A stretch of DNA of 64,000 bases, taken from sequence record OR699282.2. One strand, given 5' to 3'. Of this stretch, positions 24,256 to 52,117 are shown piece by piece. Each line of letters begins with the position of its first letter. Within the stretch, counting starts at the first letter, position 1. The notes under the pieces are model-generated. The model had not been told where the DNA came from, did not search any database, and saw only the letters and a list, made by a program, of their open reading frames with translations. A program made the translations under genes and the position numbers.

Positions 24256-24855
24256 ATGGGGTGTACTATGTTTTTAAAAAATACTTATGAATTAATTAAA
24301 ATGCTTCAAAATATGAATTCCGGTGGCTTGTTTCCCTATTACTCTGAGGATGAAACTCATCGTTTAGTCCTTAAATTGGATGAAACTGGACGTATTATAT
24401 CACTAAGAACAACAGTCCCCAGTGTAGAACCAGTAATTACCAAATCAACTCAAAATTCAGGAACTGCTGTTAAAACACCACAAACATACAACTCTAATTA
24501 CCAACAACCACAAATGTACACGATTAGCACTCCACCTATTAAACGAGTTGCTTGTATTGTGAATATAAAAGTATCTAAGGACTATCGCGACTTAATATCA
24601 GTTGAATGGTCAGAACTAACATCATCATTAGCAACAAATGGATTTGTAGTAACAAATACAGGTCTAGCACAAAATGTGAAAGAAGGACAACAGATCATGA
24701 GTGCATTGTATCTTAGTAATGGTTGTGTTATCATCAATGGTAAGTTGTATAGCGATGCCGACCCCACTGCATTCACTGAAGATTTGATTGGTGATAAAGA
24801 ATACAGCATTCTTGAAATTATGAATTTGAAAAAGGTATATGAAAACCATGACTAG
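24256..24855 (+). CDS. hypothetical protein
   Basis: 199-aa ORF. Confidence 0.6.
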   Translation: MGCTMFLKNTYELIKMLQNMNSGGLFPYYSEDETHRLVLKLDETGRIISLRTTVPSVEPVITKSTQNSGTAVKTPQTYNSNYQQPQMYTISTPPIKRVACIVNIKVSKDYRDLISVEWSELTSSLATNGFVVTNTGLAQNVKEGQQIMSALYLSNGCVIINGKLYSDADPTAFTEDLIGDKEYSILEIMNLKKVYENHD

Positions 24856-25420
24856 ATTTCATCAAGATGATTTGCCATTTATCCAAGAACTAGAAGAACT
24901 GGTGATAAGTATTATGGATGAAATTAGTACTTGGGATATAACAGTTTTTCGAAATGTATATGATAAAGTGGTGAATTTTAAAAATGTTAATATTGAAGTA
25001 AAACATAATAATTTTTACTTAACAAAACAATTCATTCTAACTCGACCAGGATCAAAGCCAGTTAAACGTAATTTATCATTCGGACACCTGATTGGTGCAG
25101 AAAATGTACATGATGAATGGGTTGATTCAATCTATTCGTATACAAAAGAACTTATTCCTGATATTGAGAAAAAATATTATCTTAGTATCACATTAGATGA
25201 AAACGGTAATCTTAATGCATATTCAATAAATTCTTCTTCAAATGTTCCATTACATTCACTGACGATTGGTGATAAAAAAATGCTAATAAATTCTGAAACA
25301 TGGTATAATAGAGAAAATTTCGCAGCAGAATCATTTCAGTACTCAGTATCTGAACCAAAGTCACCTTTTGATTTAGTGTTTGTTAATAATATTATTTTAC
25401 GTTTTGGTGTAGGAGTGTAA
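24839..25420 (+). CDS. FQxS-box family protein (divergent)
   Basis: ENFAAESFQYSVSE near the C-terminus. Confidence 0.45.
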   Translation: MKTMTRFHQDDLPFIQELEELVISIMDEISTWDITVFRNVYDKVVNFKNVNIEVKHNNFYLTKQFILTRPGSKPVKRNLSFGHLIGAENVHDEWVDSIYSYTKELIPDIEKKYYLSITLDENGNLNAYSINSSSNVPLHSLTIGDKKMLINSETWYNRENFAAESFQYSVSEPKSPFDLVFVNNIILRFGVGV

Positions 25421-25423
25421 TTT

Positions 25424-25777
25424 ATGCTAATTTATTTAAGTGTTATTGTAATTTCATTACTGGTATCATTCGCTGTTCTTAAAATTGTTGCTATTTGTAG
25501 AAGTAAGATTGATAGTTCTGAAACTAGTTCAGTACTTGACTTGATTATGGACCATCCTAAAATCTGTGGTATTATTGTATTATTCGTTGTACTGATTAAT
25601 ACATATATTGTCAGGGAACATTTATATAATATGTATGATTGTAGTGTTAGATCTATATCACAAGGTGTTGAAACAGACTATAGTTGGTACTATGAGAAAT
25701 GTCGATTTAAAAACCAGCATGGTATTTGGGTTGATTTTGATAAACTACGTGGAACACCTTCAGGAGAAGAAGAATAA
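25424..25777 (+). CDS. hypothetical membrane protein
   Basis: two hydrophobic helices. Confidence 0.6.
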   Translation: MLIYLSVIVISLLVSFAVLKIVAICRSKIDSSETSSVLDLIMDHPKICGIIVLFVVLINTYIVREHLYNMYDCSVRSISQGVETDYSWYYEKCRFKNQHGIWVDFDKLRGTPSGEEE

Positions 25778-25779
25778 TT

Positions 25780-26271: not shown

Positions 26272-27858
26272 ATGTTGGGTATGCTTCAAGGTGTTTGATG
26301 AAGAATATGAAATAATATTAGATGTATTGCCACAGCAGTACATGGTGTGTAATGAAAAATACAAATTGGACACCTACCCGACCCCCAAGTACATGGGAAT
26401 ATGTCCTTTGTGTGATGCAAATGGCGTGTCCAATAGTGAGATTTCATTCACTAACCAAGCCACAACTAACTGTGTATCTGGGTATATAAGAGAGAATCGA
26501 GAATATTTTATTAGGAGATTATATGAACGACAAAATCTTTGATACATATGACATCGATACTTTACTAACACCATCTGATAACAGTACTGTTAAAATGGAC
26601 ATGTACTGGATTGTCGTTGATAAAAAAGTATTTAGACATAAAATTACTAAAGTTTGGCAATGTAATAAAAACAAATCTATTGTTGAAGGATTGGCACAAT
26701 GCATTCCTAATGCAGAGGTTTTATTTTTACCATATGCATATACAAAGGAATAAAATGAAAAAAACTTGGAAAATATTCACAATACCTGCTATAATGTTGT
26801 TATTGGCACTTTTCACACCGCAGAGTCATGTATTGTCTCTTAATATTGTGGAAATAATTCTTCTTGTAATTCACTGTGTCGTGTGTTATAATTATGTAAA
26901 AGGTGATAAAGAATGAAGTTCTTTAAAATTCGAATTGGTGTAAGTTCTGGTTTATCTCATTGGGTATTTTATGATTTACCTGATAGTTATACTATTGATG
27001 ATGTAATTGATTTATATACCGAAGATCAACAATGGGTGTTAGATACCGAAACACATAGAATTGATTGTCAAGAGATTAGTGAAGAAGATTACAAGCACGG
27101 AAAGCAAGCCATGAAGTATTTTGAAACAAATATCAAAATGCTGACTGAAAACGTATTTCCAGTAAAAGAATGGGCAATTTTACTTGCTAATCCTAAAAAA
27201 CCTGTTAGAATTGGTTATCCAAATTTTCATATGGTGTATCGTATGAATGATAAGCGAGAGCTTAACTATCAATACGATTACGATTCATCTAAGTTTGGAG
27301 TTCTTAAACAATTTTTAAAGGCTTATCCAGTATGAGTGAAGATAGTAAAGAGTATATTTTACGTTGTTCTTGTGGCGATAAAATGGAGCATTGCGTTCAC
27401 ATTGCACAATTTGACTTGACAGAGGAATATGGAGATGATAAACTTGGTCAATGTCTGATAAGTATGCGTTTAAATCCTTTTTTAAAATGGTATAACCGTG
27501 TATGGGTTGCAGTAAAGTATGTTTTTGGTGTAAACGACTATCAATATGTAGAAGCAACAATTGATGTTGACATTCTAAAAGAAGTTGTGTTACAATTAGA
27601 AGATACTAGAACTGATGAGGTTAAAAAAGAACAAAGAGAAAAACGTACTGATGTGAAGGTTTTATGAGTACTGAACTTTATGAAAAAAAGTACTGTACAA
27701 ATTGCTCAACTGAGTATACAATACAAGGTATGTTGATTTGTACAATATGTCAGTCAAAGAAATCAGCAACTTTCATCGTTGATGATAGATTTGGTGATTT
27801 GAAACAGTTTAAAGCAAACCGCAATCTTCGTATTTTTAGCAATCTAAATAAGGAATAA
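26264..27858 (+). other. run of small hypothetical ORFs (26264-26542, 26523-26753, 26913-27335, 27332-27667, 27664-27858), some with CxxC pairs
   Basis: tightly packed overlapping start/stop codons; CxxC in 26264 and 27664. Confidence 0.55.
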
Positions 27859-27861
27859 TAT

Positions 27862-28290
27862 ATGAATATCGAACAAACTATCCGTGAACATTCTTTCTTC
27901 GCTCCAGAAACTGGTCGTGTTATTGAGAGCGTCAAAATTGAAGAACTAATGGTCAATGTTAAATACAAAGAACCAAATGATGAGATTAGCAGTACTTTTT
28001 GTGCTCTACGTGCACCATTCCGTAATGAAAAAGCTAAGAAACCAGCATATGTTCTTGCCATTGCACTGGGTTGTGTTGTAAAACTTGCAGTTGATGAAAA
28101 TCTTCTGAATATTAAAGTTGCACCAAGCAATGACGATGAAAACATTGATTTGAACTTTGATGGTTCTCTTGATGAAGATGTATTTTTCCAACAGTCACTT
28201 GTTTACGACTTCCGTACAGTGACACATTCTCACATCAAGTTCATTAATGAAATGGTTGGGATTGTTGCTGAATACGAAGAATCTCTCTAA
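27862..28290 (+). CDS. FQxS-box family protein
   Basis: DEDVFFQQSLVYDF. Confidence 0.7.
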   Translation: MNIEQTIREHSFFAPETGRVIESVKIEELMVNVKYKEPNDEISSTFCALRAPFRNEKAKKPAYVLAIALGCVVKLAVDENLLNIKVAPSNDDENIDLNFDGSLDEDVFFQQSLVYDFRTVTHSHIKFINEMVGIVAEYEESL

Positions 28291-28343
28291 GTAAATACAA
28301 AAGCCTCCATTATGGAGGCTTTTATCACATAAGGAAATGAAAT

Positions 28344-28895
28344 ATGATAGACCAAATTAAAATCCTTACAAAGCAAATCACTGATTTTCTTTCTGATAAA
28401 GATGGATTTAATACAGAAGTAAAAATGCACGGTGTTAGTGTTGATGTAATTGCACCAAATGGTAATGTAACAAGTTACGACATGTATGAATTACTTCTTT
28501 ATACTCTAGCAGTACGTAAACTAGGTAGTGATATTGAACTCAATATCAATACTGATGAAAGTGGGAATAAAATTTTTGCAATCAACACCAGTGCTAAATT
28601 CGATATCAGTACTGAAATTAAAAAAATAAATGAAAGTTTTATTGGCTTTAAGCATGAATCAATTCAAAGTGTTTTTATTGGAAAGCAAACTTCTAATAGT
28701 GAATGCCCATATTGTGTAATGACTTTATATAAAGATGGAAACTGGATGCGTCAAGATTTAGTATTTGCTGAACTTCTGTATGCATTTACACATGAACTTA
28801 AAATCGAATTGGACGATAGTGTTTATTGCTTTAAGAAAATTCGAAATATAACTAAAGATATACAAACCCAACTTAAAGAATTAAATGATAAATAA
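28344..28895 (+). CDS. hypothetical protein
   Basis: 183-aa ORF with AAGGA RBS after terminator 28300-28323. Confidence 0.65.
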   Translation: MIDQIKILTKQITDFLSDKDGFNTEVKMHGVSVDVIAPNGNVTSYDMYELLLYTLAVRKLGSDIELNINTDESGNKIFAINTSAKFDISTEIKKINESFIGFKHESIQSVFIGKQTSNSECPYCVMTLYKDGNWMRQDLVFAELLYAFTHELKIELDDSVYCFKKIRNITKDIQTQLKELNDK

Positions 28896-29035
28896 ATATA
28901 CCAGAAATGGTTAACATATCATGTTACTTTCCTCCCTTACATAATAATGATGCGTTATTATATTTTCATTTTGTTCTTATTCCCCTTTTGGTACAAAATC
29001 ATTTTAGTACTGCCCCGATCTTCGGGGCATTTTTC
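28889..29035 (+). ncRNA. candidate small RNA with C-rich single-stranded segments
   Basis: TAAATA twice, three hairpins separated by TTTCCTCCCTT and TTATTCCCC, then terminator TGCCCCGA-TCT-TCGGGGCA-TTTTT. Confidence 0.4.
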
Positions 29036-29055
29036 TTATCTAAAATTGAGGATAT

Positions 29056-29451
29056 ATGAAGAACAATATTGGAACTTCAATAATTAAACCACTTTCTTAT
29101 TACCTTGAAAAATTTAGAAGCACAAATGGTAATAAATTTAATAATATATTTCAGTTCTCTCATAAAGAATATATTACAATTGATCATTTTTCAAAGAAAC
29201 TAATGTATGTAAATGATAATAGTCATATTATTAAATTATCATTCGATATTGAGTTAGATAAATTAACATTTACGGAATACATTAATCAAAAAACTTCTTT
29301 TTTATGTCAATACAATAGGAAAGTATATAGTAATATTTCTATGTATCTAAATGATGAATATCACTTTCAACAATCTACAATAGAAGAAGTATTGTTCAGT
29401 ACTGAAGAATTAAAAGAACTATATTACTGGTATAATTATTTCACATCTTGA
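29056..29451 (+). CDS. FQxS-box family protein
   Basis: NDEYHFQQSTIEEV. Confidence 0.7.
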   Translation: MKNNIGTSIIKPLSYYLEKFRSTNGNKFNNIFQFSHKEYITIDHFSKKLMYVNDNSHIIKLSFDIELDKLTFTEYINQKTSFLCQYNRKVYSNISMYLNDEYHFQQSTIEEVLFSTEELKELYYWYNYFTS

Positions 29452-29506
29452 CATTATTGTGGGTTTATCCTACAATACATGATGATGCTGCATTGAGGAT
29501 AAATTT

Positions 29507-29917
29507 ATGAGTTTAGATTTACACAATGAACTAAAATATTTTTTAGATTTGGACATATCAGAATTGAACCACCACGTCAATCATATGACTAGTACTGTAT
29601 GGTGGTCTAATGATCAAGACGACCCAATTATCCAACTAAGTGATGAATCGTCAATTATGCGATTTTATAAGATTAATTATAAAACGAACATCAAGATCAC
29701 ATATGTACCATACAAAAACATACTACTAGTCGAAACACTTAATCCAAGTTCTTTATTAAAAATCACCGATTTAGATACATTACAAACAAGTGAATCTTTA
29801 TTCCAACGTTCATTAGTTGATGATCTTGGTGGTATTACTTTTGAAGATATATTACAATTGAAGAATATGTATAGTGAATTGTTGGAGATTAAAAACACTT
29901 TAGTAATGGGGAATTGA
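29507..29917 (+). CDS. FQxS-box family protein
   Basis: TSESLFQRSLVDDLGGITFEDI; promoter TTGACA-17-TACAAT near 29448. Confidence 0.75.
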   Translation: MSLDLHNELKYFLDLDISELNHHVNHMTSTVWWSNDQDDPIIQLSDESSIMRFYKINYKTNIKITYVPYKNILLVETLNPSSLLKITDLDTLQTSESLFQRSLVDDLGGITFEDILQLKNMYSELLEIKNTLVMGN

Positions 29918-29918
29918 T

Positions 29919-30323
29919 ATGGTAAGTTTACTAGATATTGATAATACCAGTTTAGTGCTGGTGAAAAAAGGTTTAATTCCAAATTCTAAAAAAATTGATT
30001 ATGCTGTTATTGAAACAAATATTGGAAATATCTGGTACGACTCTGAAAGGGATATTGTGTTTAGCTGTGTAGACAGTGATCGTTCTGAATGTTGTAGAGT
30101 CGGTCATGACGGACAATTTGTTTTTGAATTTCGTTATTGGAAGGACGCAAAATTTCACCAAGAACTGGTTGCTTTGTCAAATGAACTATATACAGAAGAA
30201 TCGTTCTTCATGGCTAGTACTATTAATGATTTTGGTTCAGTTACATTTGAGTACTATAAAAAAATATACGCACTATCCAGAGAAGTTATGAAAATTATCA
30301 GAACTGCTGAAGGTAAAGAATAA
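29919..30323 (+). CDS. FQxS-box family protein
   Basis: TEESFFMASTINDFGSVTFEYY. Confidence 0.75.
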   Translation: MVSLLDIDNTSLVLVKKGLIPNSKKIDYAVIETNIGNIWYDSERDIVFSCVDSDRSECCRVGHDGQFVFEFRYWKDAKFHQELVALSNELYTEESFFMASTINDFGSVTFEYYKKIYALSREVMKIIRTAEGKE

Positions 30324-30324
30324 C

Positions 30325-30702
30325 ATGACTACTATATATGATATTTTGGGTGTTCTGAGTAGAAATATAGATGATGATTTTGTTATTGTTCAAGATACTA
30401 GAAATACATTTCAACTACCAATAGGTTCACCAGATAGGTTAATTTTTAATAGATACTCAAATGAACTAACTTACATCCATGATGGGATTGCAATTGTATC
30501 AGTTTCTATAAACGACTATACAATACGATATGTATATGACTTCAACGATTATTGTACAAGAATCCACAGTATTGATATTTCCGAAGAGGAACTATTCCAA
30601 TTGTCATTGATTGAGAAAAATGTAATAGGAATTACAGAAATTGGTATTATTAAAAAAGCATTAAACTATACAAATATAAGAATTAATGGTGGGTGCGGAT
30701 GA
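30325..30702 (+). CDS. FQxS-box family protein
   Basis: SEEELFQLSLIEK. Confidence 0.75.
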   Translation: MTTIYDILGVLSRNIDDDFVIVQDTRNTFQLPIGSPDRLIFNRYSNELTYIHDGIAIVSVSINDYTIRYVYDFNDYCTRIHSIDISEEELFQLSLIEKNVIGITEIGIIKKALNYTNIRINGGCG

Positions 30703-31154
30703 ATGTTGACGAAATAAAAAATCATTTTGAAATTGCAATGTCATGTGAATTTGACACACAACGTGTTCATGACCCGAAAGAACATATACGAATTTGTTGT
30801 GAATTGTCAGATGATTGTAATATTTTTATTGGAAAAACCTATGACATGATCGATCTTTCATGTATAGATCCATTGGAAAGAAAAACAAAATATTTATATC
30901 TGTACAACACAACATCAGATACGATTGCAATACAACTAATATCAACCACAACATCCCAAAGTTATTATAACATAACTGAGGTTAGTAGTTTAACGTTAAC
31001 CGAAGAAGGATTCTTTCAACAATCGCTTATTCGTGAAATTGGTGTTAGTTATGATGAGTTAAATGTATTAGTAGATTGTTTCGAAAAATTAAGTACTTTT
31101 GTATTATCCCTTTTTAATATACAGTCGCAAAATCCAATGGTGGTGAAATGCTAA
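30693..31154 (+). CDS. FQxS-box family protein
   Basis: TEEGFFQQSLIREIGVSYDEL. Confidence 0.75.
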   Translation: MRMNVDEIKNHFEIAMSCEFDTQRVHDPKEHIRICCELSDDCNIFIGKTYDMIDLSCIDPLERKTKYLYLYNTTSDTIAIQLISTTTSQSYYNITEVSSLTLTEEGFFQQSLIREIGVSYDELNVLVDCFEKLSTFVLSLFNIQSQNPMVVKC

Positions 31155-31588
31155 ATCCAAGTAAATTTCTCCACTTACTTTCGATAACATCAATACCGGA
31201 TCTTACCAGTGAAACTAATGAATATCGTGAAGCTGGGGTGGTGTCTATGGAACTCGATACATTTGACCACAAATGCTATGTGACATATGACCCACCGCGT
31301 TATGGTAAAGAACATTCTTCTTTTATTTTTGTATTCGTATACACTGTATATGATAATACAACACTTGATGATGTTTGTATTGACACTTACGAAATTTGTG
31401 ATAATATCATAACTGATGACAACAATAACTCATTTGATATGTCACTATATAACACAGAAGAATCGTTGTTTCAACTTAGTACTGTTATTGATGCACCATC
31501 ATTAGAAGATATAAAACAATTTCAAGAACATCTTGACGCAGTTCGTGAGATGTTCTATAATCATTATCCAGAAGTAGAGTTCAATTAA
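31148..31588 (+). CDS. FQxS-box family protein
   Basis: TEESLFQLSTVIDAPSLEDI. Confidence 0.75.
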   Translation: MLNPSKFLHLLSITSIPDLTSETNEYREAGVVSMELDTFDHKCYVTYDPPRYGKEHSSFIFVFVYTVYDNTTLDDVCIDTYEICDNIITDDNNNSFDMSLYNTEESLFQLSTVIDAPSLEDIKQFQEHLDAVREMFYNHYPEVEFN

Positions 31589-31602
31589 CTAAAGGTAATA
31601 AG

Positions 31603-31863
31603 ATGACTAAAGTAGTTCGTAAACGCCACATGATGAACATGGATGAATTTCGCACATTTGACAAATATCGTACTATGTTTCGTATGCTTTCACAGGGCCG
31701 TCCAATCGTCATTGTAACAGAGAATTACATGTCACCTGAGATTATGTTTGGTAATTATGAAAAGGTCTTCATGTTGTACGTGAAGCGTGGATTACTTACA
31801 ATCAAGACATTAGCTGAAGCAACTGATGAAGATATGGATGGTGATAATACCTTTACCATGTGA
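31603..31863 (+). CDS. hypothetical protein
   Basis: 86-aa ORF with AAGGT RBS. Confidence 0.6.
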   Translation: MTKVVRKRHMMNMDEFRTFDKYRTMFRMLSQGRPIVIVTENYMSPEIMFGNYEKVFMLYVKRGLLTIKTLAEATDEDMDGDNTFTM

Positions 31864-31871
31864 GGAAATAT

Positions 31872-31949
31872 ATGTCTGAAAAGCCAAAAGAACCATTAGA
31901 TCGTGATGATGATTTTTATGACGAACGATATGGAGATGATGATGAGTGA
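31872..31949 (+). CDS. 25-aa acidic micropeptide (below the ORF-track cutoff)
   Basis: GAGGA RBS; MSEKPKEPLDRDDDFYDERYGDDDE; stop overlaps the next ATG at 31942. Confidence 0.5.
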   Translation: MSEKPKEPLDRDDDFYDERYGDDDE

Positions 31950-32193
31950 ACATAGTGCTGTGCTTAAAAAGATTTTAAAGGAACTTGATGGTGAATTTAA
32001 TGTCACAGAAGAAGAATATCAGCATTGGAAGAAAGGTTTTGAACAACTAACCGAGTATGATAAAGTGTTCAATATGATTGGCGTAATTAGCCAGTATTTA
32101 CTCGGTGGAGGACGTGCAAGTGCTTCAATTCTGGCATCTGCAATCATCTGTACATCACGATGGTGTGATGAAAAAAGTTTGGAAGATTTCTAA
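31942..32193 (+). CDS. hypothetical protein
   Basis: in-frame ATG 31942 within ORF 31903-32193. Confidence 0.55.
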   Translation: MSEHSAVLKKILKELDGEFNVTEEEYQHWKKGFEQLTEYDKVFNMIGVISQYLLGGGRASASILASAIICTSRWCDEKSLEDF

Positions 32194-32245
32194 ATAAGAT
32201 GCTATAATATATTATAGTACCTTAACAATATAAAAAGGATTTTAT

Positions 32246-33106
32246 ATGAAACCTATCCGAATACTTTCTCTTTTTAATGGAATGAGTGTGGGATATATGG
32301 CATTGCAAGATGCGGGTATCCCAGTTGAAAAATATTATTCATCCGAAATTGATAAGTACGCAATAGCTGAATCTCAATCTAACTTTCCTGATATTATCCA
32401 ATTGGGTGATATAACTAAGTGGAGAGAATGGGATATTGAGTGGGACAAAATAGATTTATTAATGGGTGGTTTCCCATGCCAAGCCTGGTCAGTTGCAGGT
32501 AAACAGGGTGGTTTAAATGATATACGTGGGCAGTTATTTTTAGTAATGGTTGAAATTTTTGATCATATCAAAAGTCTCAATCCTAACTTGAAATTTCTGT
32601 TTGAAAATGTTAAAATGAAGGAAGATTTCAAAGAATACATTAATAGTATTTTAGGAATCACGCCAGTACTGATAAACTCCCAGCATTATACGCCTCACTT
32701 CAGGCAGAGATATTACTGGTACAGTACTGATAAGCTTTTTATACCACCTGCATTATCCAATGCACCTAAACTTCAAGATATTATTGAAGATGGTTGGTAC
32801 ACTGACAGAACCGCTTCGTACTGTATAGATGCTAACTATTTTAAAGGTGGTGATTGTAACCAGTACTTTAATAAATCCAGACGACAATTGGTGTTTCGTG
32901 ACCCAGTGATCAGTCGTCAATATCTATTAGAGAATGGCAAAAGAAATATTGACTATAGACACTTAAGTGTAGTAGAATGTTGTAAATTACAGGGTGTTCC
33001 TGAAGATTTCTTTAAAGTGTCTAGTAAGACACAAGCATACAAAATGCTTGGGAATGGATGGACTATGCCAGTTATATCACATTTACTAAGAGAGATATTC
33101 TTTTGA
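32246..33106 (+). CDS. C5-cytosine DNA methyltransferase
   Basis: motif I LSLFNGMSVG, motif IV GGFPCQAWS, motif VI FENV, motif VIII RQRYYW, motif X KMLGNGW. Confidence 0.9.
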   Translation: MKPIRILSLFNGMSVGYMALQDAGIPVEKYYSSEIDKYAIAESQSNFPDIIQLGDITKWREWDIEWDKIDLLMGGFPCQAWSVAGKQGGLNDIRGQLFLVMVEIFDHIKSLNPNLKFLFENVKMKEDFKEYINSILGITPVLINSQHYTPHFRQRYYWYSTDKLFIPPALSNAPKLQDIIEDGWYTDRTASYCIDANYFKGGDCNQYFNKSRRQLVFRDPVISRQYLLENGKRNIDYRHLSVVECCKLQGVPEDFFKVSSKTQAYKMLGNGWTMPVISHLLREIFF

Positions 33107-33588
33107 ACATAAACAAATACCAAACTTATATAAAACGTACAGAAAGTTTCAAACGGCTGGCTGTAAAATCTGAATTAGAATTTAATTTGTATTATCCTAA
33201 TATTGGTGATGAGGTATTTTATTGCTCTCATTCAAAGAATGGAACTTTACTTAAATCGGGTAAAGGAACTATTGTTGATATGACCGCAAATTTCAGAGGT
33301 AAACTTAATGTAATGTACAAAGTACAAGATTCAAGTACTGAGTGTATTCATGAAGTGATGCATAACATACCTGCATATCCAAAAGATTTTGTTCAGCTAA
33401 TATCTCGAAGGGAGAAACCTATGTTTTATTGTGGTTACGACAAATTAACCAAACAAATTATTCCTAATACTATGGGAAAATTTAAAAGTGATGTGAAATC
33501 TGAACTTGAAAAGAAATTTGGCACGTCATGGGAAACTGAAAACGAGTTTATCGAAATTCGTTTAATTGAAATTACTATACTTGAATAA
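33058..33588 (+). CDS. hypothetical protein
   Basis: ORF directly after the MTase (true start may be TTG near 33103); terminator 33594-33619. Confidence 0.55.
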   Translation: MDYASYITFTKRDILLNINKYQTYIKRTESFKRLAVKSELEFNLYYPNIGDEVFYCSHSKNGTLLKSGKGTIVDMTANFRGKLNVMYKVQDSSTECIHEVMHNIPAYPKDFVQLISRREKPMFYCGYDKLTKQIIPNTMGKFKSDVKSELEKKFGTSWETENEFIEIRLIEITILE

Positions 33589-33630
33589 TTACAAATCCAC
33601 GCATTGCGTGGATTTTTCATAGGTGCATAT

Positions 33631-34146
33631 ATGCCAATTCCTTATGTTAAAATTATTAATAATATTCTCGATTCATGGGAAGATGTTATTACTGGTAAAA
33701 AGCAACCATCACCAGTACATGCTTTATCTGGGAAACTTCAATTCAGAATGTCAAACCAAACTGAAACATTTAATAATCATGATATTTGCATTACATTAAA
33801 AACACCTATTAGTATTGTAATTAAAAAAAATAAAGATGATGAATTGACATTATCTATTGGTCGTGATAAAATCATTTTAAGTAATTTGTCTGAAGAAGAA
33901 TTCTTTCAAAGAAGTACTATTATCGATATGAAAGATTTCACATATGAATCATTGGTTGAACTCAATACACGTTTTAACGATATTCAGGAACGATTGCGAC
34001 CAATTCTTCGTATCGAAGAAGAAGCCTGGATTGAAAGTATTAGGAAGATGCAAGAAATGTTGAAAGAAAATATTAACAATCTGGGTAAAGCTACAATGGA
34101 ATTTGGTAAAACTTTTAAACTGAACTTTTCAAAGGATCGTAAATGA
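33631..34146 (+). CDS. FQxS-box family protein
   Basis: SEEEFFQRSTIIDMKDFTYESL. Confidence 0.75.
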   Translation: MPIPYVKIINNILDSWEDVITGKKQPSPVHALSGKLQFRMSNQTETFNNHDICITLKTPISIVIKKNKDDELTLSIGRDKIILSNLSEEEFFQRSTIIDMKDFTYESLVELNTRFNDIQERLRPILRIEEEAWIESIRKMQEMLKENINNLGKATMEFGKTFKLNFSKDRK

Positions 34147-34598
34147 AAATTGATAATTTGATTCATGTTTTAGGATCTTTACATAAAATATTATCACATC
34201 TACATGAGATAAAGAAACTGGGATTTAACATCTCAAATTCAATTGAAACTACATTTAAATATCAATCAATTACTGGTGATGGTTATTACATAATCGAATA
34301 TACTTATGAAACCGATCCAGACTTCTATCCTCTTACGTTGAGAATTTATCCAACAAATCCGAGAGGAATTCACGACATATCATCAATTTCACTTGATCCA
34401 GATGGTGAAACGAGTATTGAATACAATAATGATTCAAAACCAGAATTTTACATTGATGATATTAAAATGATGTTCAACGATGAATATGTGTTCCAGCAAA
34501 GTACAGTGCATGATGTTGGAAGTACTAATGGACAATTTTGGAATACATGTTATTATCATATGATTGAAATTTGTAAATTACTAAAAGGTGATGATTAA
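34143..34598 (+). CDS. FQxS-box family protein
   Basis: NDEYVFQQSTVHDVG. Confidence 0.7.
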   Translation: MKIDNLIHVLGSLHKILSHLHEIKKLGFNISNSIETTFKYQSITGDGYYIIEYTYETDPDFYPLTLRIYPTNPRGIHDISSISLDPDGETSIEYNNDSKPEFYIDDIKMMFNDEYVFQQSTVHDVGSTNGQFWNTCYYHMIEICKLLKGDD

Positions 34599-34981
34599 TG
34601 AAATACAGCATTGAAGTACATTACACTACAGGGGACACTGAAACTGAAGATTCAGTTACCAATACATTGGATGTTCAATGGGAATCAAAGGATGAGGCAG
34701 TTGTAGCATTACAGTCTTTGAAAGAGCATTGGGTATTCTTTAAGAAACTCGATGATGCATATAGTAACGAACGTGCGACAATAATCGATGAAGCCAAACA
34801 TAAAGAATGGTTTGATCCAATGTCATGTGAATTCTCTTTCTTTGTAAAAATTGGAGATAAAAAAATTCCAGTACGAACACCGTGGAACGGCTACTTTGAA
34901 ACTCTTCATAATGCACGAGTTGTCGCTGTTGATAATCCTGAGCAAATCGATTTCGATTCATTGGACTGGAAAAAACTATGA
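34598..34981 (+). CDS. hypothetical protein
   Basis: 127-aa ORF, coupled. Confidence 0.65.
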   Translation: MKYSIEVHYTTGDTETEDSVTNTLDVQWESKDEAVVALQSLKEHWVFFKKLDDAYSNERATIIDEAKHKEWFDPMSCEFSFFVKIGDKKIPVRTPWNGYFETLHNARVVAVDNPEQIDFDSLDWKKL

Positions 34982-35421
34982 CAGTACTGCACCAATTGAA
35001 GAAGGTTAAGCATCCAGTTGTATACGAGGATTGGAAACGACAGAAGTTGATGGGTGATTTTTATTTCCCAAAATCTAAAGTTCTTGCGAATTCAAGATGT
35101 ACATATTTCAAACATAATGATAAAGATACAGTATTTGTTGAAATGGGTTTCAATCCATCAAATACAATGTTCAGTACTAACCAAACATTTTACAAATTTC
35201 ATATCCAAAAAGATTCATTTTCTATCATGATTTTAAAACTTTTCGTTGAAGATCTGCTATACCGTGGTGAAAGTGTTCCTTTATCATTAGTGGATATTCC
35301 TTATAATAATTTAGAGGAAATGTACTTCCAACAGTTGACAGTGCAAGAAAACTTCGGTATGATAGGACTTCAAGAGTTAGAGATGATTAAACAAATTCGT
35401 GATATCTACTTTAAGGAGTAA
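34978..35421 (+). CDS. FQxS-box family protein
   Basis: LEEMYFQQLTVQENFG. Confidence 0.7.
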   Translation: MTVLHQLKKVKHPVVYEDWKRQKLMGDFYFPKSKVLANSRCTYFKHNDKDTVFVEMGFNPSNTMFSTNQTFYKFHIQKDSFSIMILKLFVEDLLYRGESVPLSLVDIPYNNLEEMYFQQLTVQENFGMIGLQELEMIKQIRDIYFKE

Positions 35422-39800: not shown

Positions 39801-40193
39801 ATGACTGAATCAGAACTACACGAAATGATAGATTTCATTTATGAAATGGTACAAGATAAAAATAACATCAATACAATTGCATCAGGCCCAAGACAAATTG
39901 GTAACCAAATAACATATTCTTTGTCCTTATGGTTACACCCGTGCATTAAGGTTGATTGTTTGTATTTCCGTCCTGATATTGATGCTTATTATTTTGTCAA
40001 TCATGATGCATTAATGAAACCACATAATCGTCCATTTGATGATACCTTTGTGACACACCCATTTTACCTGGCTGATTCCGAAGAAGATGAGTTTCAAAAG
40101 AACACAACGTTAAGCCCAGGTGAAATTTGCATCCCTTACGTACTTAAAGATAAAATGAATCACATCACAGAAGTTATGAAAACATGCTGGTAG
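39801..40193 (+). CDS. FQxS-box family protein (divergent)
   Basis: SEEDEFQKNTTLS. Confidence 0.55.
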   Translation: MTESELHEMIDFIYEMVQDKNNINTIASGPRQIGNQITYSLSLWLHPCIKVDCLYFRPDIDAYYFVNHDALMKPHNRPFDDTFVTHPFYLADSEEDEFQKNTTLSPGEICIPYVLKDKMNHITEVMKTCW

Positions 40194-40461: not shown

Positions 40462-40950
40462 ATGCCAATTCGTGGTGTACCAGAACCATTAATGGAAGTT
40501 ATTAAGCATGTTCGCATTGGAGATCGAGAAGTTAATCTTCGCCGTAATAACATTTATTACTTTAAAACTTCAGAAATGAGTTCTGTACAGATTGTCATTG
40601 GTACATCTATTAAGATCACTCGCGTACTTGATGGTAGTACTGACTTCGTTGAATATAATGTACTTACTAATAAAGTAACGCATATATATAAATGGAGTGG
40701 GTATAAAACTATTAAGTATGAATTTGACTTAGCTAGAACTGAAGAAGAACGATTTATGCTGAGTACTATCAATCCAGCAAACTATCCCGATCTTGATGCA
40801 TTTTTGCTAATTTTAAAATTGTATAATGAAGCAAATCAGAAAGCTAAAGAGTATGATAGAATCATGTATGAACGCCGAAAAGAACGTGCACAAAAAAGTT
40901 ATGATCTGTATGATAGCCCATACGTAAAATATAGTAAGGGATCGAAATGA
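40462..40950 (+). CDS. FQxS-box family protein
   Basis: TEEERFMLSTINP; AAGGAG RBS before ATG 40462. Confidence 0.65.
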   Translation: MPIRGVPEPLMEVIKHVRIGDREVNLRRNNIYYFKTSEMSSVQIVIGTSIKITRVLDGSTDFVEYNVLTNKVTHIYKWSGYKTIKYEFDLARTEEERFMLSTINPANYPDLDAFLLILKLYNEANQKAKEYDRIMYERRKERAQKSYDLYDSPYVKYSKGSK

Positions 40951-41351
40951 ATAAAGAAGTTCAAATTATCATAACTCCACCTATACAAAGTCTGGATGTA
41001 TCCATTAGTGATTTTTTGGAAAAATACTATGAATGGTTTAATGAAGATTCAGTAATTTATAACCATTCATTGCCTGATGGTTTCGTTGAGCTTATTGAAT
41101 TAAATGCCAAATCACTATACTTCTGTGTTGAATACAATGATTATATGACAGATGAAGCATATCGTTTTCGTTGTACATTGTATCCTAACCATTTTTCCAT
41201 TGGTTATAAAGATTACCAGTACTGTACCACTAACTATAGTGTTGAGGAAGAATTTCAGTACAATTTACTTTATCCTGATTTAGATTATACGATTGCAGTA
41301 CTGTTGACTAAAATCATGGATTTTTATAAAGATAAATATAATGCAGCCTAA
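40947..41351 (+). CDS. FQxS-box family protein (divergent)
   Basis: SVEEEFQYNLLYPDLDY. Confidence 0.55.
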   Translation: MNKEVQIIITPPIQSLDVSISDFLEKYYEWFNEDSVIYNHSLPDGFVELIELNAKSLYFCVEYNDYMTDEAYRFRCTLYPNHFSIGYKDYQYCTTNYSVEEEFQYNLLYPDLDYTIAVLLTKIMDFYKDKYNAA

Positions 41352-41957: not shown

Positions 41958-41962
41958 TAAGA

Positions 41963-42298
<336 letters not shown>

Positions 42299-42299
42299 A

Positions 42300-42482: not shown

Positions 42483-42498
42483 ACAAGGAATACAAAAA

Positions 42499-43043
42499 AT
42501 GGAAACAACTTTATTAGAAGTTATTCAATCATTAAAACCTGAAGATGAGGTTCAAGTACTACTACATGGTTATCGTGTAAAAGGTACTGTGGTTTTAGTC
42601 AATGATACAACATTGGTTATTACAGAAACAAACCCATATGATAGTAATCAACTTGCCAATATCCATATCGATATCACTGGAATTATTGGTGTCGGTGTAT
42701 CTAAAACACTTGCATAAATCATTAATTCATTATATAATGATTATCACTGGTTCTAGATGAGGATAATATTATGCATTTTGAAAAATTCAACGTAAATCGT
42801 AACACACGCATTGAAGTTCTTTATGAAACTCAAGACACCATTAGTATTCGTACAAGTAGTGGGGATGTATATCATGACTGTACGATTGGCTGGGAACAGG
42901 GAAGAACGCGTAGTGCAGTATTTGATAATTATCGCTTTTATCAAGGAGACACTACGATTTGGCCTGAATACGTAGAAGATATTGCGTTTGAAGATGAACA
43001 TAAAGATGAATTTATCAAATTTAATCCTCAAACTGAATCATAA
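42499..43043 (+). other. two small hypothetical ORFs (about 42499-42717 and 42771-43043)
   Basis: AAGGA and GAGGA RBS; promoter TTGCAT-17-TATAAT near 42710. Confidence 0.55.
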
Positions 43044-43060
43044 ATAATGGGACATCACAT

Positions 43061-43176
<116 letters not shown>

Positions 43177-43180
43177 AAAT

Positions 43181-43282
<102 letters not shown>

Positions 43283-43287
43283 AAACC

Positions 43288-43448
43288 ATGACGCATGAAG
43301 AATGGATGAATGACATTAATTTTAGATATTCGGGTATCGGTAAATGGCTAAAGTATCATTGGGAATTCATTTCAGAGCCACATATGTATGATAAACTTAT
43401 CAACGATCCAGCATATGAAATGTACTTAATTGAACTACTGGTACGAAT

Positions 43449-43452
<4 letters not shown>
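43288..43452 (+). CDS. THEEW microprotein 4 (54 aa)
   Basis: MTHEEWMNDINFRYSGIGKWLKYHWEFISEPHMYDKLINDPAYEMYLIELLVRI; AAGGT RBS. Confidence 0.7.
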
Positions 43453-43614
<162 letters not shown>

Positions 43615-43624
43615 AAAAAAAAGA

Positions 43625-44037
<413 letters not shown>

Positions 44038-44063
44038 CTAAATAATTCAGTACTGTATAATGC

Positions 44064-44147
<84 letters not shown>

Positions 44148-44400
44148 TTAATAATTCAAAGGTGAATATGATGCTATCACACAAAACAGCAACTGTTGAA
44201 AATATTGAATCATTATCTGCACAAGAATTGGTTGACAAAATTAAAGAAGTATGTGATAATAATGGCATTGATATGAATGATACATTTATTAGTGTAGGTT
44301 ATGGTGATTTAGAAATTCAATCTAAAACACTATATTATACTTGACTAAATAGTTCAGTACCGAAGGAGATTAATATGTTTAAAGATGAACGTCCAGATTT

Positions 44401-44441
<41 letters not shown>

Positions 44442-44447
44442 GAATTC

Positions 44448-44790
44448 CACAATCAGACGTATATGGTGTAAGTTACGTCGATGCAATCCAGAACAAGATC
44501 TCTGGTACTCTAGGAAGTGGTGAATGTTAACCTAGACGGGTTTGATAATTGGACGATAGGCAATTATTACTTGACTAGCAGGTTGAAACTAGAGGTGACA
44601 GTCCTTCACCAAACTGGAAAACCGGATGGACTTTTATTTAAAAGGGTAAGGCGTGGAAATATGTTTACAGAAGTTGCTTTTAGTAGCCTGTACGCCCCAC
44701 GTCAAGGTAGCCGAAAGGCAAGTTAAAACGGATGGTTATAAAGCTGAATTAACAGCGGCGTTTAAAAGCGTCACCATCCATTTTTTTTAA
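44448..44790 (+). ncRNA. candidate large structured ncRNA A (about 340 nt)
   Basis: behind promoter 44413-44441; about 10 consecutive hairpins incl. GCC-GAAA-GGC; GGATGGT/ACCATCC closing stem then T8. Confidence 0.65.
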
Positions 44791-44804
44791 TTAAAGTTGG
44801 TGAT

Positions 44805-45194
<390 letters not shown>

Positions 45195-45210
45195 TATTAA
45201 GTATTGATAT

Positions 45211-45456
<246 letters not shown>

Positions 45457-45461
45457 CTAAA

Positions 45462-45626
<165 letters not shown>

Positions 45627-45650
45627 ACGAAATTACAATAGGAAATTAAA

Positions 45651-47071
<1,421 letters not shown>

Positions 47072-47073
47072 TA

Positions 47074-47130
<57 letters not shown>

Positions 47131-47215
47131 AGTAAGAGTAAAAATGAAAGTAAGTAAAAAAACTACCAAGCAGCTTGAAGAACTTTGTAGTGCTGCACCT
47201 ATGCCGACTCTTGGC

Positions 47216-47316
<101 letters not shown>

Positions 47317-47328
47317 TATCTTACTTCT

Positions 47329-47410
<82 letters not shown>

Positions 47411-47424: not shown

Positions 47425-47850
47425 ATGAAATACAACATTGTTAAAATGGTGAACTATGTATTAAAAAACAACGCATGGTCACTGCATGATGTACATATAG
47501 AAGATATTGGTGAAGTTAGAGTATTTTGCTATGATCCAGATTTGAATCAAACCACAGATTTGAGTAAATGTTTTAATATTTTTCTTGGTTATGAATTCAA
47601 TAATCATTTTTATTCATTTGATGTGTATTTTGAAAAAGTTATATTCAGAAGTTATGAATGTGATAATGAAGATTATGATTATGATGATGAATCAATTGAA
47701 TTGAATGTTAACGATATTGATACTGAAGAAAAATTCTTCCAGTACTGCCTCGTTAACAACACATTAGGATTAACATTTGATGACATTAGTGCTATCCTTA
47801 AAGTTCAAAAATTGATTCCAGAAGAGGTATTAAATCCGTTAAATGACTAG
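47425..47850 (+). CDS. FQxS-box family protein
   Basis: TEEKFFQYCLVNNTLGLTFDDI. Confidence 0.75.
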   Translation: MKYNIVKMVNYVLKNNAWSLHDVHIEDIGEVRVFCYDPDLNQTTDLSKCFNIFLGYEFNNHFYSFDVYFEKVIFRSYECDNEDYDYDDESIELNVNDIDTEEKFFQYCLVNNTLGLTFDDISAILKVQKLIPEEVLNPLND

Positions 47851-48050: not shown

Positions 48051-48428
48051 TTGATTAAAAGGTACTTGATGGATAGTCTAATAGTACGTATAATGCAAGA
48101 TGTTCGTAAGAATCTTTATACTGGTAATTTTGATGATCATAACATAAAAATATTATGTTATGATGGTTTCACACTGACACATCCATCAGAATCTAATAAT
48201 ATATACATAGCATATACTTCTCCTAATATTTTGTATCAATTTGATTTATATAGTACAATGGCTAAGATAACCTTAGATGTTTCTAATGAGCCGATTTTTA
48301 TAGCAGTACGTGATGTTGAGTACACAGAAGAGTCATTATTCCAGTACTCAATGATAAATGACATTGGTGACTTGACATTAGAAGAAATAAATGTTATAGT
48401 TGGTATGTGTCGTTTGATTAATCCATAA
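48051..48428 (+). CDS. FQxS-box family protein
   Basis: TEESLFQYSMINDIGDLTLEEI. Confidence 0.75.
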   Translation: MIKRYLMDSLIVRIMQDVRKNLYTGNFDDHNIKILCYDGFTLTHPSESNNIYIAYTSPNILYQFDLYSTMAKITLDVSNEPIFIAVRDVEYTEESLFQYSMINDIGDLTLEEINVIVGMCRLINP

Positions 48429-49070: not shown

Positions 49071-49142
49071 AAGTTGACTTTTTAACTTCTACTGTGTTAT
49101 ACTTAAGGCTGATTCGATGAATCGGCCTTTTTTCTTATATAG

Positions 49143-49571
49143 GTGAATGCAATGAGTTATTTGTTTACTTTAATTGATAAGTATGTTGACATTGTATACC
49201 GTCAAGTTTGTAGTGATACGTTTGAAACAAAAAACCCAATTAGAGATGGCATTTTTGATGTTGTCGTTGGATCATTTTTGAATGGATACACCGAGACATT
49301 ATACAACAGTAATAATATTTTTATTTCAGTTCAATCCAGACATACATCAGACTATGCTGTTAGCATTGATATTTGGGAAAATAATATAGAAATAGATATA
49401 ACGGAACATACTAACATTCATGTTGATGATACATTTAATCAATTAACTGAAGAAATGTACTTGCAGTTGAATTTTGTACATGATCTTACAAATATCAGTT
49501 ATGATACATTAAGGAAAATATGTTTTCTTAGTGGGGTGATCCGTAGTAATATGAGTAAGGATGGGAAGTGA
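49143..49571 (+). CDS. FQxS-box family protein
   Basis: TEEMYLQLNFVHDLTNISYDTL. Confidence 0.7.
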   Translation: MNAMSYLFTLIDKYVDIVYRQVCSDTFETKNPIRDGIFDVVVGSFLNGYTETLYNSNNIFISVQSRHTSDYAVSIDIWENNIEIDITEHTNIHVDDTFNQLTEEMYLQLNFVHDLTNISYDTLRKICFLSGVIRSNMSKDGK

Positions 49572-49989
49572 AATGTTAAAAATTCCACCTAAGTCGTTAA
49601 CACATCTTATTGAATGTGGTGTAATATTTTCCGAAGGTGATACCTCATCATACACATCGGTCGATGAACCTTATAATTTTTCATACCAATCTTATAAAAA
49701 TAATTCTAAAATTTCTTGTAGATATGCTGAAAACATATTAATAGATGTTTCGTTACATAATGTTCCGAAATTTTACATTGATATCTTTGGTGATTCTTTG
49801 ACAATTCGAACATATGATTATTTTATTAATAACGACCTCTTGAGTCTTCCAATTGAACATGATACTATAGATTCAGAGATGTTCTTTCAACTATCAACAG
49901 TTTACGATTTACAGGGTTTAACTGTTGAGCAGTTGAATGGAATATTTGAGATTTCACGAAACATACGAAGCAGGAATAAAAATGTCTAA
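49561..49989 (+). CDS. FQxS-box family protein
   Basis: DSEMFFQLSTVYDLQGLTVEQL. Confidence 0.75.
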   Translation: MGSEMLKIPPKSLTHLIECGVIFSEGDTSSYTSVDEPYNFSYQSYKNNSKISCRYAENILIDVSLHNVPKFYIDIFGDSLTIRTYDYFINNDLLSLPIEHDTIDSEMFFQLSTVYDLQGLTVEQLNGIFEISRNIRSRNKNV

Positions 49990-50392
49990 TATTTTAAATG
50001 AAAAAACAGTTGATGTTGTTATTGGTGTTCTTAACACCGCAACTTCATTTCAGAAGAAACACAGTGTTGTATACTTCGGTGAAGATTGTTGGCTGAACTA
50101 TACTAATAATTCGTTTATAATTCGTGTAGAGGCTGATGATATTGGATTAACCGTTCAGGTAGGATGTGCCAAAACTGACAAACAAATCACTGTCATTGTT
50201 GATAAACTTACGTCTTCTTTTTATGATAGTATAGATGATTGTGAACACTATAGTTCAACATTTTATGATACAGAAGAAGAACATTTTATGGAAAGTACTG
50301 TTCAAGAGTTAGCTATTCCATATAAGCTAATGAAAGCAGTGAGTGATTTAATTTTAAAATATAAAAAAATAGGAGTTACTAATGCAATTTAA
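49982..50392 (+). CDS. FQxS-box family protein
   Basis: TEEEHFMESTVQELAIPY. Confidence 0.7.
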   Translation: MSNILNEKTVDVVIGVLNTATSFQKKHSVVYFGEDCWLNYTNNSFIIRVEADDIGLTVQVGCAKTDKQITVIVDKLTSSFYDSIDDCEHYSSTFYDTEEEHFMESTVQELAIPYKLMKAVSDLILKYKKIGVTNAI

Positions 50393-52117
50393 TGGTAAAG
50401 TTTCCAAAGTAGGTTTGGTTTTTGAAAACTGTGAATTTGTTGATATTGATGTAAAGAATGTTTTATGGATGCATATTGCTGATGAGAAGACTCTTTGTAG
50501 CCGTTTTTCAAACGGACTGACAATTAGTACTGTTATCGGTGAGTTCGGTATTGCATTACGCAGCAATACACCATCGGATTTCATGGACAACTCTACACTG
50601 TTAGACCGTTTAAAAATGCGTGACGTTACACACGTTTATCTATATGATACTAACGGTGTTGAACAGCGTTATGTAGTTGAATGGGCTAATTATAACCTTA
50701 GTGATCAATATTCAGTAAACCAGCGTGTTCAAATCACCCCTGGTGGTAATATTGTGTTTGTTAGTTCAACTGGTAAATTAATCAGTGTAGATGATAAAAA
50801 CATTGACCTATTCACAGCATATAACTAATACGAGCTTCCATGAAAACAATCAAAATTCATTTCAAAGACACTTGGACAGAAGTAAGTACTGGTAATATTC
50901 AGGATATTTTATATAGTACTGAAACTATTCATGTTTATGATGAAGAGACTGCTTCCGAGCAGTTAAAAGTTTTGCATCGTAGTGTTGGTGTGCACACTGA
51001 ATATGGCATTAAACATACTCGTGAATTACTTAATACTAATCACATTGAAACCCGTAAAGCAAACTTATCAAAAGAAGAAATGTTCGATTTCATCCTGAAC
51101 CATAAAGTTCATATTGAGCCTGATGGGTCTATATGGGAGAACACTGCTGGACAAAAAGTGCTGAAAAAATATCATGTTTCAATTGATAATGTAAAAATGT
51201 CAGGGTATGATTTGGAAGATGCAATTAATGAATATGTATCTAGGCAGAGGGCAAATTGATGAGCTTGATAACATTTACAATTATTTGTTGCATTACTATT
51301 GTACTTTGTCGCCTGATTCATGTATACTCATATCATAAAGCGTTGCGAATCGAACAAGAGATTTACAACGAAAACCGAGAACCAGAACCAGTCAAGAAGC
51401 CACCATCACCTTATGGGTTGAAACGTGAGATGCATTCTCAAAGTAAAAAGTGGGGTTATGCAATTACTAAAAATGGCTACATCTATACTGCAAGTAATGG
51501 TTATTTTCAAATTCACCACGAATTAGAAGTGGCAGTTCAAATTTTGTGGGAGATGGAGGACATTGGTGGTTATGAGCGTACTAAGTTTGAATTCATATCA
51601 AATGATCCAGGAACTTCACGAGAAACATGATATAATTGTTGATGTGGAGAAGAAGGAAGTCGTTATGAAAAAGCAAGCATATAGAATTTTAGAAGACTTC
51701 CATCTAAAAGCATTTATAATGAAGTTCTGTACAGATGAACATCTTACCGGACGAGTAATACGTAAGGAGTTGTAAATGAACTTAAGTTCAACAATTCAGT
51801 ACTTGAGCAGTAACTTCGAGAAAATTATTTCTCGCGGTGGGATGATTGTACACCCAGAAACAGAGGAAATGTACATCATTGGATTTGATAAAAATTCTTA
51901 TGATCAAGTACTTGTAATTTCCAAGTTAGAAAGTTATAATGAAGTTGTTCAGTTTTGCTGTACCGAATTTGGTATCTATATTAAAGACGCTGAAACTAAT
52001 ACAATTTCGCATTATTTTTACCACACACTGATGGGTACTAAAGACTTCGGCTTGAAGTTCGATGATTTAGTACAATGTCACTATATGTTTAAAACCTTCC
52101 CAGCTAGTGGGCATTAA
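50382..52117 (+). other. hypothetical ORFs 50382-50828, 50840-51259, 51256-51630 (membrane-anchored), 51776-52117
   Basis: coupled ORFs with RBS; 51776 ends with DFGLKFDDL like the tail of the FQxS box. Confidence 0.6.

Follow-up and report, generated by a model that had tools for sequence, protein, structure and literature searches.

The question raised by the 64,000-nucleotide stretch of sequence record OR699282.2 analyzed here (the window, numbered from its first letter) is whether a long run of small open reading frames (ORFs), which share little beyond a short motif near the C-terminus, encodes one protein family, and what this motif, the FQxS box, might be. The window matches Escherichia phage BAU.Micro_ELP-22 (OR699282.2; 373,488 bp) at 100% identity; this jumbo myovirus is placed in the genus Asteriusvirus (Rak2/121Q/PBECO4 group), and a record position minus 248000 gives the window position. 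Rak2-like jumbo phages (121Q, PBECO4, RaK2, K64-1, GAP32, CBB) have been widely isolated, and most of their genes are of no known function. An initial annotation of the window had listed 22 ORFs with the box, every one a hypothetical protein in the record, and had proposed a modular system in which a variable target-binding domain is joined to a constant docking tag. We found that the ORFs are true paralogues of one large family without known relatives, and structure prediction gives good support to a single fold shared by the window-type members, in which the box would be an internal helix; the modular docking-box idea is weakened by these models.

The box family in the window and in the genome

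The shared C-terminal box proved to be real. The loose box pattern, F[QM]x[SNCL][TLMF][VITL], matched 18 plus-strand ORFs of the window, all within 27862-50392, and elsewhere in the 64 kb a single 52-amino-acid (aa) ORF on the minus strand. When the residues of each window ORF were shuffled (500 trials), the loose pattern gave a mean of 1.1 matches and a maximum of 6, and a strict pattern, observed in 9 ORFs, was expected 0.002 times. The F of the box is found at a distance of 88-118 residues from the N-terminus and of 28-46 from the C-terminus, except that two window members have longer tails. The dissimilarity of the upstream parts was likewise borne out: the stretch before the box (N-part; box and tail form the C-part) has a median pairwise identity of 0.21, the same as the shuffled null (0.21), and pairwise phmmer searches of the N-parts with box and tail removed returned one significant pair, 47425/48051.

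A family profile built from 16 members recovered two ORFs that had been held out, 49143 (E 1.5e-5) and 44805 (E 3.5e-4). Two more, 39801 and 40947, reached E 6e-3 and 2e-3 with the profile iterated over the genome, aligned over their full length and carried a box-like motif at the expected place. Eighteen of the ORFs listed initially are firm members and these two are probable ones; 24839 (E 190) and 51776 (E 3.4) found no support with the genome-iterated profile. The feature is not bounded by 24839-52117, the span first noted: members occur outside that span and outside the window.

The members in the window are given below, with E values marked "training" where the sequence was part of the profile alignment. 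Orthology and selection were assessed by comparing the window with the syntenic region of phage Ecwhy_1 (about 88% DNA identity).

27862..28290, plus strand: member, 142 aa, box F at residue 109; box pattern match; profile E 1.1e-15 (training); Ecwhy_1 orthologue with 87% aa identity
29056..29451, plus strand: member, 131 aa, box F at residue 104; profile E 1e-13 (training); Ecwhy_1 orthologue with 73% identity
29507..29917, plus strand: member modelled with AlphaFold2, 136 aa, box F at residue 99; phrog_24941 match; sigma70-like site (11/12) at 29448-29476
29919..30323, plus strand: member, 134 aa, box F at residue 97, FM variant; profile E 3.7e-16 (training)
30325..30702, plus strand: member, 125 aa, box F at residue 91; profile E 5.1e-10 (training)
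30699..31154, plus strand: member, 151 aa as annotated (ORF open from the GTG at 30693); profile E 2.9e-16 (training); Ecwhy_1 orthologue with only 49% identity
31148..31588, plus strand: member, 146 aa, box F at residue 108, net charge -21; public-data orthologues with 99-62% identity
33631..34146, plus strand: member, 171 aa, long basic C-terminal tail; profile E 7.5e-17 (training)
34143..34598, plus strand: member, 151 aa, box F at residue 117; profile E 2.6e-14 (training)
34978..35421, plus strand: member, 147 aa, L replaces S in the box; profile E 2.5e-15 (training); first in the N-part-only leave-one-out test
39801..40193, plus strand: probable divergent member, 130 aa, degenerate box at residue 98; never in training; E 2.3e-3 (window ORFs) and 6.4e-3 (genome-iterated, profile positions 15-125)
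40462..40950, plus strand: member, 162 aa as annotated (ORF open from 40402); FM variant with a basic tail; profile E 1.8e-14 (training)
40947..41351, plus strand: probable divergent member, 134 aa, degenerate box at residue 103; never in training; E 1.6e-3 (genome-iterated, positions 17-124) and 0.1-0.4 with earlier profiles
43684..44037, plus strand: member, 117 aa, flanked by tRNA genes; profile E 1.3e-13 (training); sigma70-like site (11/12) at 43625-43652
44805..45194, plus strand: member, 129 aa, degenerate box; E 3.5e-4 when held out (16-member profile), later 6.2e-9 (training)
47425..47850, plus strand: member, 141 aa, C replaces S in the box; N-part similar to that of 48051 (E 5e-5)
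48069..48428, plus strand: member, 119 aa as annotated (ORF open from the TTG at 48051); phrog_17453 match
49152..49571, plus strand: member, 139 aa as annotated (ORF open from the GTG at 49143); L replaces F in the box; E 1.5e-5 when held out; Ecwhy_1 orthologue with only 44% identity
49561..49989, plus strand: member, 142 aa; profile E 1.2e-18 (training); no clear Ecwhy_1 orthologue
49937..50392, plus strand: member, 151 aa from the annotated start (49982 of the initial annotation is an internal ATG); FM variant; profile E 5.8e-14 (training)

In addition, a 96-aa ORF at 31903-32193, annotated as two small coding sequences, matched the N-part-only profile (E 1.2e-4) and has no box; it may be the remnant of a family member.

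The search was extended to the whole genome by taking the rest of OR699282.2 in pieces and iterating the family profile to convergence over 1299 ORFs (E <= 1e-3), with the second copy of the terminal repeat (record 362-373 kb) excluded. Taken as the proteins of 100-230 aa that match the profile significantly and have the box 28-98 residues before the C-terminus, the family comprises 67 firm members genome-wide, 18 of them in the window; the profile matched nothing in five shuffled ORF sets or in one reversed set. All 67 lie on the plus strand, which holds 780 of the 1299 ORFs, and in 64 the aligned column reads FQ or FM. When the profile was restricted to the C-terminal 42 residues, all 67 were recovered, plus two further candidates (record 33857 and 333145). 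A first array, at record 27.5-56 kb, has about 41 members; the window array, at 275.8-298.4 kb, has 18 to 20, and the remainder are scattered at about 67, 107, 123-125, 312, 317 and 348 kb. Together they occupy 31.5 kb, or 8.4% of the genome, and account for roughly 9% of the 751 annotated features. Beyond the genome, the profile was run against 1.84 billion cluster representatives (E <= 1e-3) and matched 137 clusters, and members were found in RaK2 and Ecwhy_1. The family is far larger than the initial annotation had it.

Simple clustering does not bring this family to light: BLASTP at 1e-5 joined only fragments of six and four genes. With phmmer, 148 of the 2211 member pairs were significant, and single linkage placed 61 of the 67 members in one component, in which 15 links bridge the two arrays. 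Adjacent members form the strongest pairs (at rank distance 1, 19 pairs are significant, the best with E 2e-50 to 4e-33), and since the nearest genes are the most alike, the family appears to have grown by tandem duplication followed by extreme divergence. Among all member pairs there was none with C-part identity of at least 60% and N-part identity below 20%; very similar C-parts go with similar N-parts, which gives no sign of recent swapping of a box module onto foreign N-domains.

Other paralogue arrays occur in the same genome, namely 23 genes of about 72 aa at record 21.5-27.5 kb, 13 RCC1-like genes on the minus strand at 333.8-346.6 kb and 9 genes of about 62 aa at 347.4-351.3 kb, and a related metagenomic contig carries a comparable array of genes of about 55 aa.

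Predicted fold and the place of the box

From an alignment of 145 sequences, AlphaFold2 predicted the 29507 protein to be a single compact domain with a predicted local distance difference test score (pLDDT) of 89.4 and a predicted template modelling (TM) score, pTM, of 0.80. Assignment of secondary structure to this model with DSSP gave a helix (residues 5-13), seven strands (21-25, 30-34, 40-45, 50-56, 61-67, 72-78 and 81-86), the helix that holds the box (95-102) and a last helix (112-134), so that the box is the second-last helix, with a pLDDT of about 92. A first model, of the 31148 protein from a 22-sequence alignment, reached a pLDDT of 54 and was used for the order of elements alone, which is the same. 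Independently built models in BFVD of members from RaK2, Yersinia phage fHe-Yen9-03 and GAP32 gave TM-scores of 0.58-0.87 over 134-153 columns at 14-26% identity. The length of the N-part has a median of 98 residues in the 145 sequences (interquartile range 91-103), and a profile built from N-parts only placed 11 of the 18 window members within the top 4 of 244 ORFs in leave-one-out tests. That the box should be a core helix of one fold was the very outcome that the initial annotation had set against its modular reading, and it is what the 29507 model predicts; together with the lack of module shuffling among member pairs, it weakens the notion of a variable domain with a separate docking tag. 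A metagenomic member in public data has, in addition, a RecQ-1-like helix-turn-helix domain by Pfam (E 3.7e-12), which shows that fusions exist.

The residues of the box were tabulated over the 137 database clusters:

column before the helix: T or S in 115/136
box position 1: E in 126/137
box position 2: E in 123/137
box position 4: F or Y in 97/135
box position 5: F in 133/135
box position 6: Q in 118/135, M in 16
box position 8: S in 119/135
box position 9: T or L in 126/135
box position 10: V, I or L in 130/135
box position 12: D in 97/135

Positions 3, 7 and 11 alone vary freely and the rest are conserved; this spacing (i, i+4, i+8) suggests the narrow exposed stripe of a mostly buried helix. 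The last helix also starts with a T/S-x-E/D pair, and the T or S before each of the two helices, together with the acidic first turn, looks like a helix cap. The aromatic and aliphatic residues of the box would anchor both helices on the sheet. A conserved polar site within the box, serving a partner, a ligand or self-association, is plausible.

Relatives, divergence and gene setting

The 137 matching clusters have lengths of 62-185 aa, many of the matches cover most of the profile, and the named cluster members all trace to Rak2-like phages or E. coli records. In BFVD there are further matches in Yersinia fHe-Yen9-03/04 and weaker ones in Pectobacterium CBB. Judged by these matches, the family appears to be restricted to Rak2-like jumbo phages. 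In RaK2, 14 members are likewise placed around the methyltransferase and tRNA genes described below, and the orthologue of 29507 there has 27% identity only; one metagenomic jumbo-phage contig has six members in 20 kb. The same proteins are found in PHROGs (phrog_24941, 17453, 24510, 24321, 30548, 21500, 23719, 38573, 30841, 34619 and others), where window members match their own group end to end (E 1e-41 to 1e-118) and weak cross-matches are centred on the box; there the family is split into many groups of unassigned function, and its unity and its size of 67 per genome are not recorded. Paralogues have been mentioned in general terms only in the genome papers of RaK2, where they make up about 10% of gene products (PMC3622015), and of CBB, with 22 paralogous ORFs (PMC5259590). 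Such counts at the BLAST level do not reveal one family, and our literature search found no description of the FQxS-box family.

In the syntenic region of Ecwhy_1, 19 profile matches were found, and 18 of the 19 window matches have a positional orthologue, the exception being 49561. Ecwhy_1 has an extra copy (17329-17832 of the compared region) that lacks a window counterpart; this copy and the window gene 49561 without a clear orthologue point to gain and loss within the genus. Family orthologues of the two phages are 44-95% identical (mean 76%), and neighbouring genes average 85%. The pooled ratio of nonsynonymous to synonymous substitution rates was 0.34 in the N-parts and 0.20 in the C-parts, compared with 0.13 in neighbouring genes, which indicates purifying selection with a faster rate than in the neighbours, above all in the variable N-part.

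The proteins are hydrophilic and acidic, with a median isoelectric point of 4.7 and a net charge of -9.5, compared with 6.0 and -3 in neighbouring ORFs. A DNA methyltransferase gene (window 32246-33106; DNA-cytosine-methyltransferase in the 121Q and Ecwhy_1 records) lies inside the array at a position conserved in Ecwhy_1 and RaK2, and seven tRNA genes (Gly x2, Ser x2, Met, Asn, Thr; 41985-47408) are interleaved with members, as they are in RaK2. Array 1 adjoins arrays of tiny genes and the left terminal repeat. Both record ends (1-21 kb and 352-373 kb) show one and the same series of small genes (for example 193-372 and 352402-352581), as fits a long direct terminal repeat. The best sigma70-like sites (at least 11 of 12 matches) fall on the coding strand in 14 of 14 cases in window 27000-46900 and in 7 of 8 cases in array 1. 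No member carries a virion annotation in OR699282.2 or RaK2, and the RaK2 structural genes map to two other clusters (PMC3622015). From the acidity, the gene setting, the strand bias of promoter-like sites and this lack of virion annotation we infer that the members are early intracellular accessory proteins. The suggestion of an expanded host-interaction arsenal agrees with such a setting, in which early-looking arrays have tRNA genes and a DNA methyltransferase among their members and evolve fast.

Comparison with described families and systems placed the proteins in none of them. At E <= 1, no Pfam family was common to more than two of the 145 aligned members, NCBIfam and PDB sequences gave no match, PADLOC returned for the 18 window members no defence system apart from one stray Cas6b (E 0.0015), and a PDB fold search with the model gave nothing below E 0.07. 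Pfam, NCBIfam, PDB sequences and BFVD likewise yielded no named relative. The poxvirus proteins with ankyrin repeats and a C-terminal F-box-like element (PRANC), with which the box had been compared, are also a large viral paralogue set with a constant C-terminal element and variable N-parts, but they consist of two modules, whereas the phage protein is predicted to be one small compact domain of 136 aa (29507 model). Pfam searches at E <= 1, made with 10 members and then with all 145, found no F-box, PRANC, ankyrin or other repeat family in the matches listed, and the likeness fails on every feature tested; bacteria, E. coli included, are not known to have the SCF ligase to which F-boxes dock.

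Phages of the T4 type have internal proteins in which a short conserved capsid-targeting sequence is found on hypervariable small proteins thought to counter host defences; this segment is N-terminal, directs the protein into the capsid and is cleaved off. The box differs from it in being predicted as an internal helix near the C-terminus, and no family member is annotated as a virion protein. With inhibitors and DNA mimics of the Ocr, Arn and Ugi type the family has in common that the proteins are small, acidic and soluble and are encoded in early accessory regions, but those are single-copy genes and these number dozens, and no similarity of sequence or fold was found. Immunity-protein arrays (CdiI, SUKH) were rejected as a comparison, the matches to SUKH_6 (E 0.021) and CdiI_4 (E 0.025) being at chance level and confined to one member each; no toxin gene is annotated beside either array.

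Genes that could encode a common partner had also been named, a ClpS-like and an HslV-like one, both supposedly in the window. The former is there; the HslV-family gene lies elsewhere in the genome, and nothing ties either of them to the family. These genes and others noted in this connection are:

window 4214-4759: ClpS-like gene, annotated "ATP-dependent protease", homologue of the ClpS adaptor by Pfam (E 2e-5)
window 3697-4200 and 4831-5376: its neighbours, an IF3 homologue and a KTSC-domain protein
window 58913-59878: RNA polymerase sigma factor
record 85787-86380: HslV-family peptidase, outside the window
record 84851-86380: "protease" together with the HslV-family peptidase
record 168221-170509: 763-aa "ATP-dependent protease" (Lon-like)

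Possible functions of the family

The reading that we prefer, and to which we would give an even chance, is that of one large family specific to Rak2-like phages, a single compact domain in which the box is a core helix and the sheet is variable, whose members are early, non-virion binders or inhibitors of host targets. Each window member would then form one domain in which a helix at the N-terminus precedes an antiparallel sheet of seven strands, followed by a short helix and, at the C-terminus, a long one. The box would be the short capped helix with the turn after it and would hold the two helices on the sheet, and its near-invariant polar residues (E, E, Q, S, D) would probably form one conserved site. 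The sheet-forming N-part would be free to vary until pairwise similarity is lost, and is likely to be the specificity surface. The proteins would be made early from host-type promoters, would stay in the infected cell and not enter the virion, and may act there as diversified binders or inhibitors of host or competitor proteins.

Several observations weigh against this reading. Comparison of N-part group profiles between groups with hhalign gave no signal above reversed-sequence controls, and with these comparisons empty, sequence alone cannot prove a common N-part fold. The confident model is that of one window member, and the members of array 1 lie outside the modelled set; their N-parts measure 59-159 residues, and among these members is a short subfamily of proteins of about 105-120 aa. 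Burial of the box residues is argued from their periodicity. The conservation of E, E, Q and S in the box at more than 90% exceeds what packing usually needs, which leaves room for a shared partner. Total counts of promoter-like sites are within the shuffled expectation, so that the strand bias of the best sites alone is suggestive. Finally, searches of Pfam, NCBIfam, PADLOC and PDB sequences and folds gave no homologue of known function, and the function is wholly inferred.

The room left for a shared partner is what an adaptor model would fill, in which the variable N-part binds different targets and the constant box with the following helix docks all members on one machine, be it a protease, RNA polymerase or a scaffold. 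Near-invariant polar box residues across 67 paralogues and 137 clusters would suit a conserved exposed site; the recovery of all 67 members by the C-module alone and the wide range of N-part lengths in array 1 also speak for the model, and the phage does encode ClpS-like, HslV-family and Lon-like genes. We nevertheless hold this model to be doubtful, since the box is a helix within a confidently predicted compact domain and neither a terminal tag nor a separate module, member pairs give no sign of module exchange, Pfam shows no F-box, PRANC or other adaptor domain, and no partner was identified nor co-variation with any gene shown. A more specific proposal, that the polar patch of the box docks the members on a single machine such as a ClpS-like, HslV-family or Lon-like complex while the sheets capture different host proteins, as a combinatorial adaptor or decoy system, seems to us decidedly unlikely. 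The conserved helices might instead be an oligomer interface, for example of a ring like the acidic trimer of p32/MAM33, through which the proteins mimic nucleic acid or soak up basic host proteins. The p32/MAM33/gC1qR topology is an N-terminal helix, seven antiparallel strands and two C-terminal helices, and the phage family resembles it in the order of elements (on the phage side from the model, on the p32 side as known from the literature) and in strong acidity. Among the weak Foldseek matches in the PDB, p32-family chains recur (1yqf, 3rpx, 7te3, 6szw; E 0.13-1.3, TM 0.15-0.32; 141-182 aa, compared with about 135 aa for the phage proteins), but these matches are not significant, a TM-score of at most 0.32 speaks for topological likeness and not for membership, and none of the 145 aligned members matched Pfam MAM33 at E <= 1, so that we regard self-association of this kind as unlikely.

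Two further explanations take the box as a site in its own right. As a catalytic or a ligand- or metal-binding site, it would make the members small enzymes or sponges with different substrates, and E, E, Q, S and D within 12 residues are indeed of types that typically contact ligands; the replacement of Q by M in 16/135 clusters and of S by several residues would be unusual for catalytic positions, and no enzyme or sponge family was matched by sequence or fold, which makes this very unlikely. The succession of acidic, aromatic and Gln residues also resembles the cleavage site of a Gln-specific protease (3C/NIa-like), which would free the C-terminal helix. Protease cleavage sites are normally extended and exposed, whereas the box is predicted to be helical and inside a compact domain; in addition the residue following Q is variable, and no such protease was seen among the genome annotations read. 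Cleavage at the box is accordingly the most improbable of the explanations considered, and we have set it aside.

If the conserved polar site did turn out to serve all members for docking or ligand binding, the family would represent a new kind of diversified phage effector system, and if the adaptor or decoy system were true, it would give bacterial viruses a counterpart to the arsenals of substrate adaptors found in large eukaryotic viruses. The family itself shows how far a viral fold can diverge while a 12-residue signature persists. About one gene in eleven in BAU.Micro_ELP-22 belongs to a single hidden family, which turns dozens of "hypothetical proteins" into one tractable problem, and what is learned from a single structure, expression profile or partner would bear on 67 genes per genome and on at least 137 clusters in the databases.

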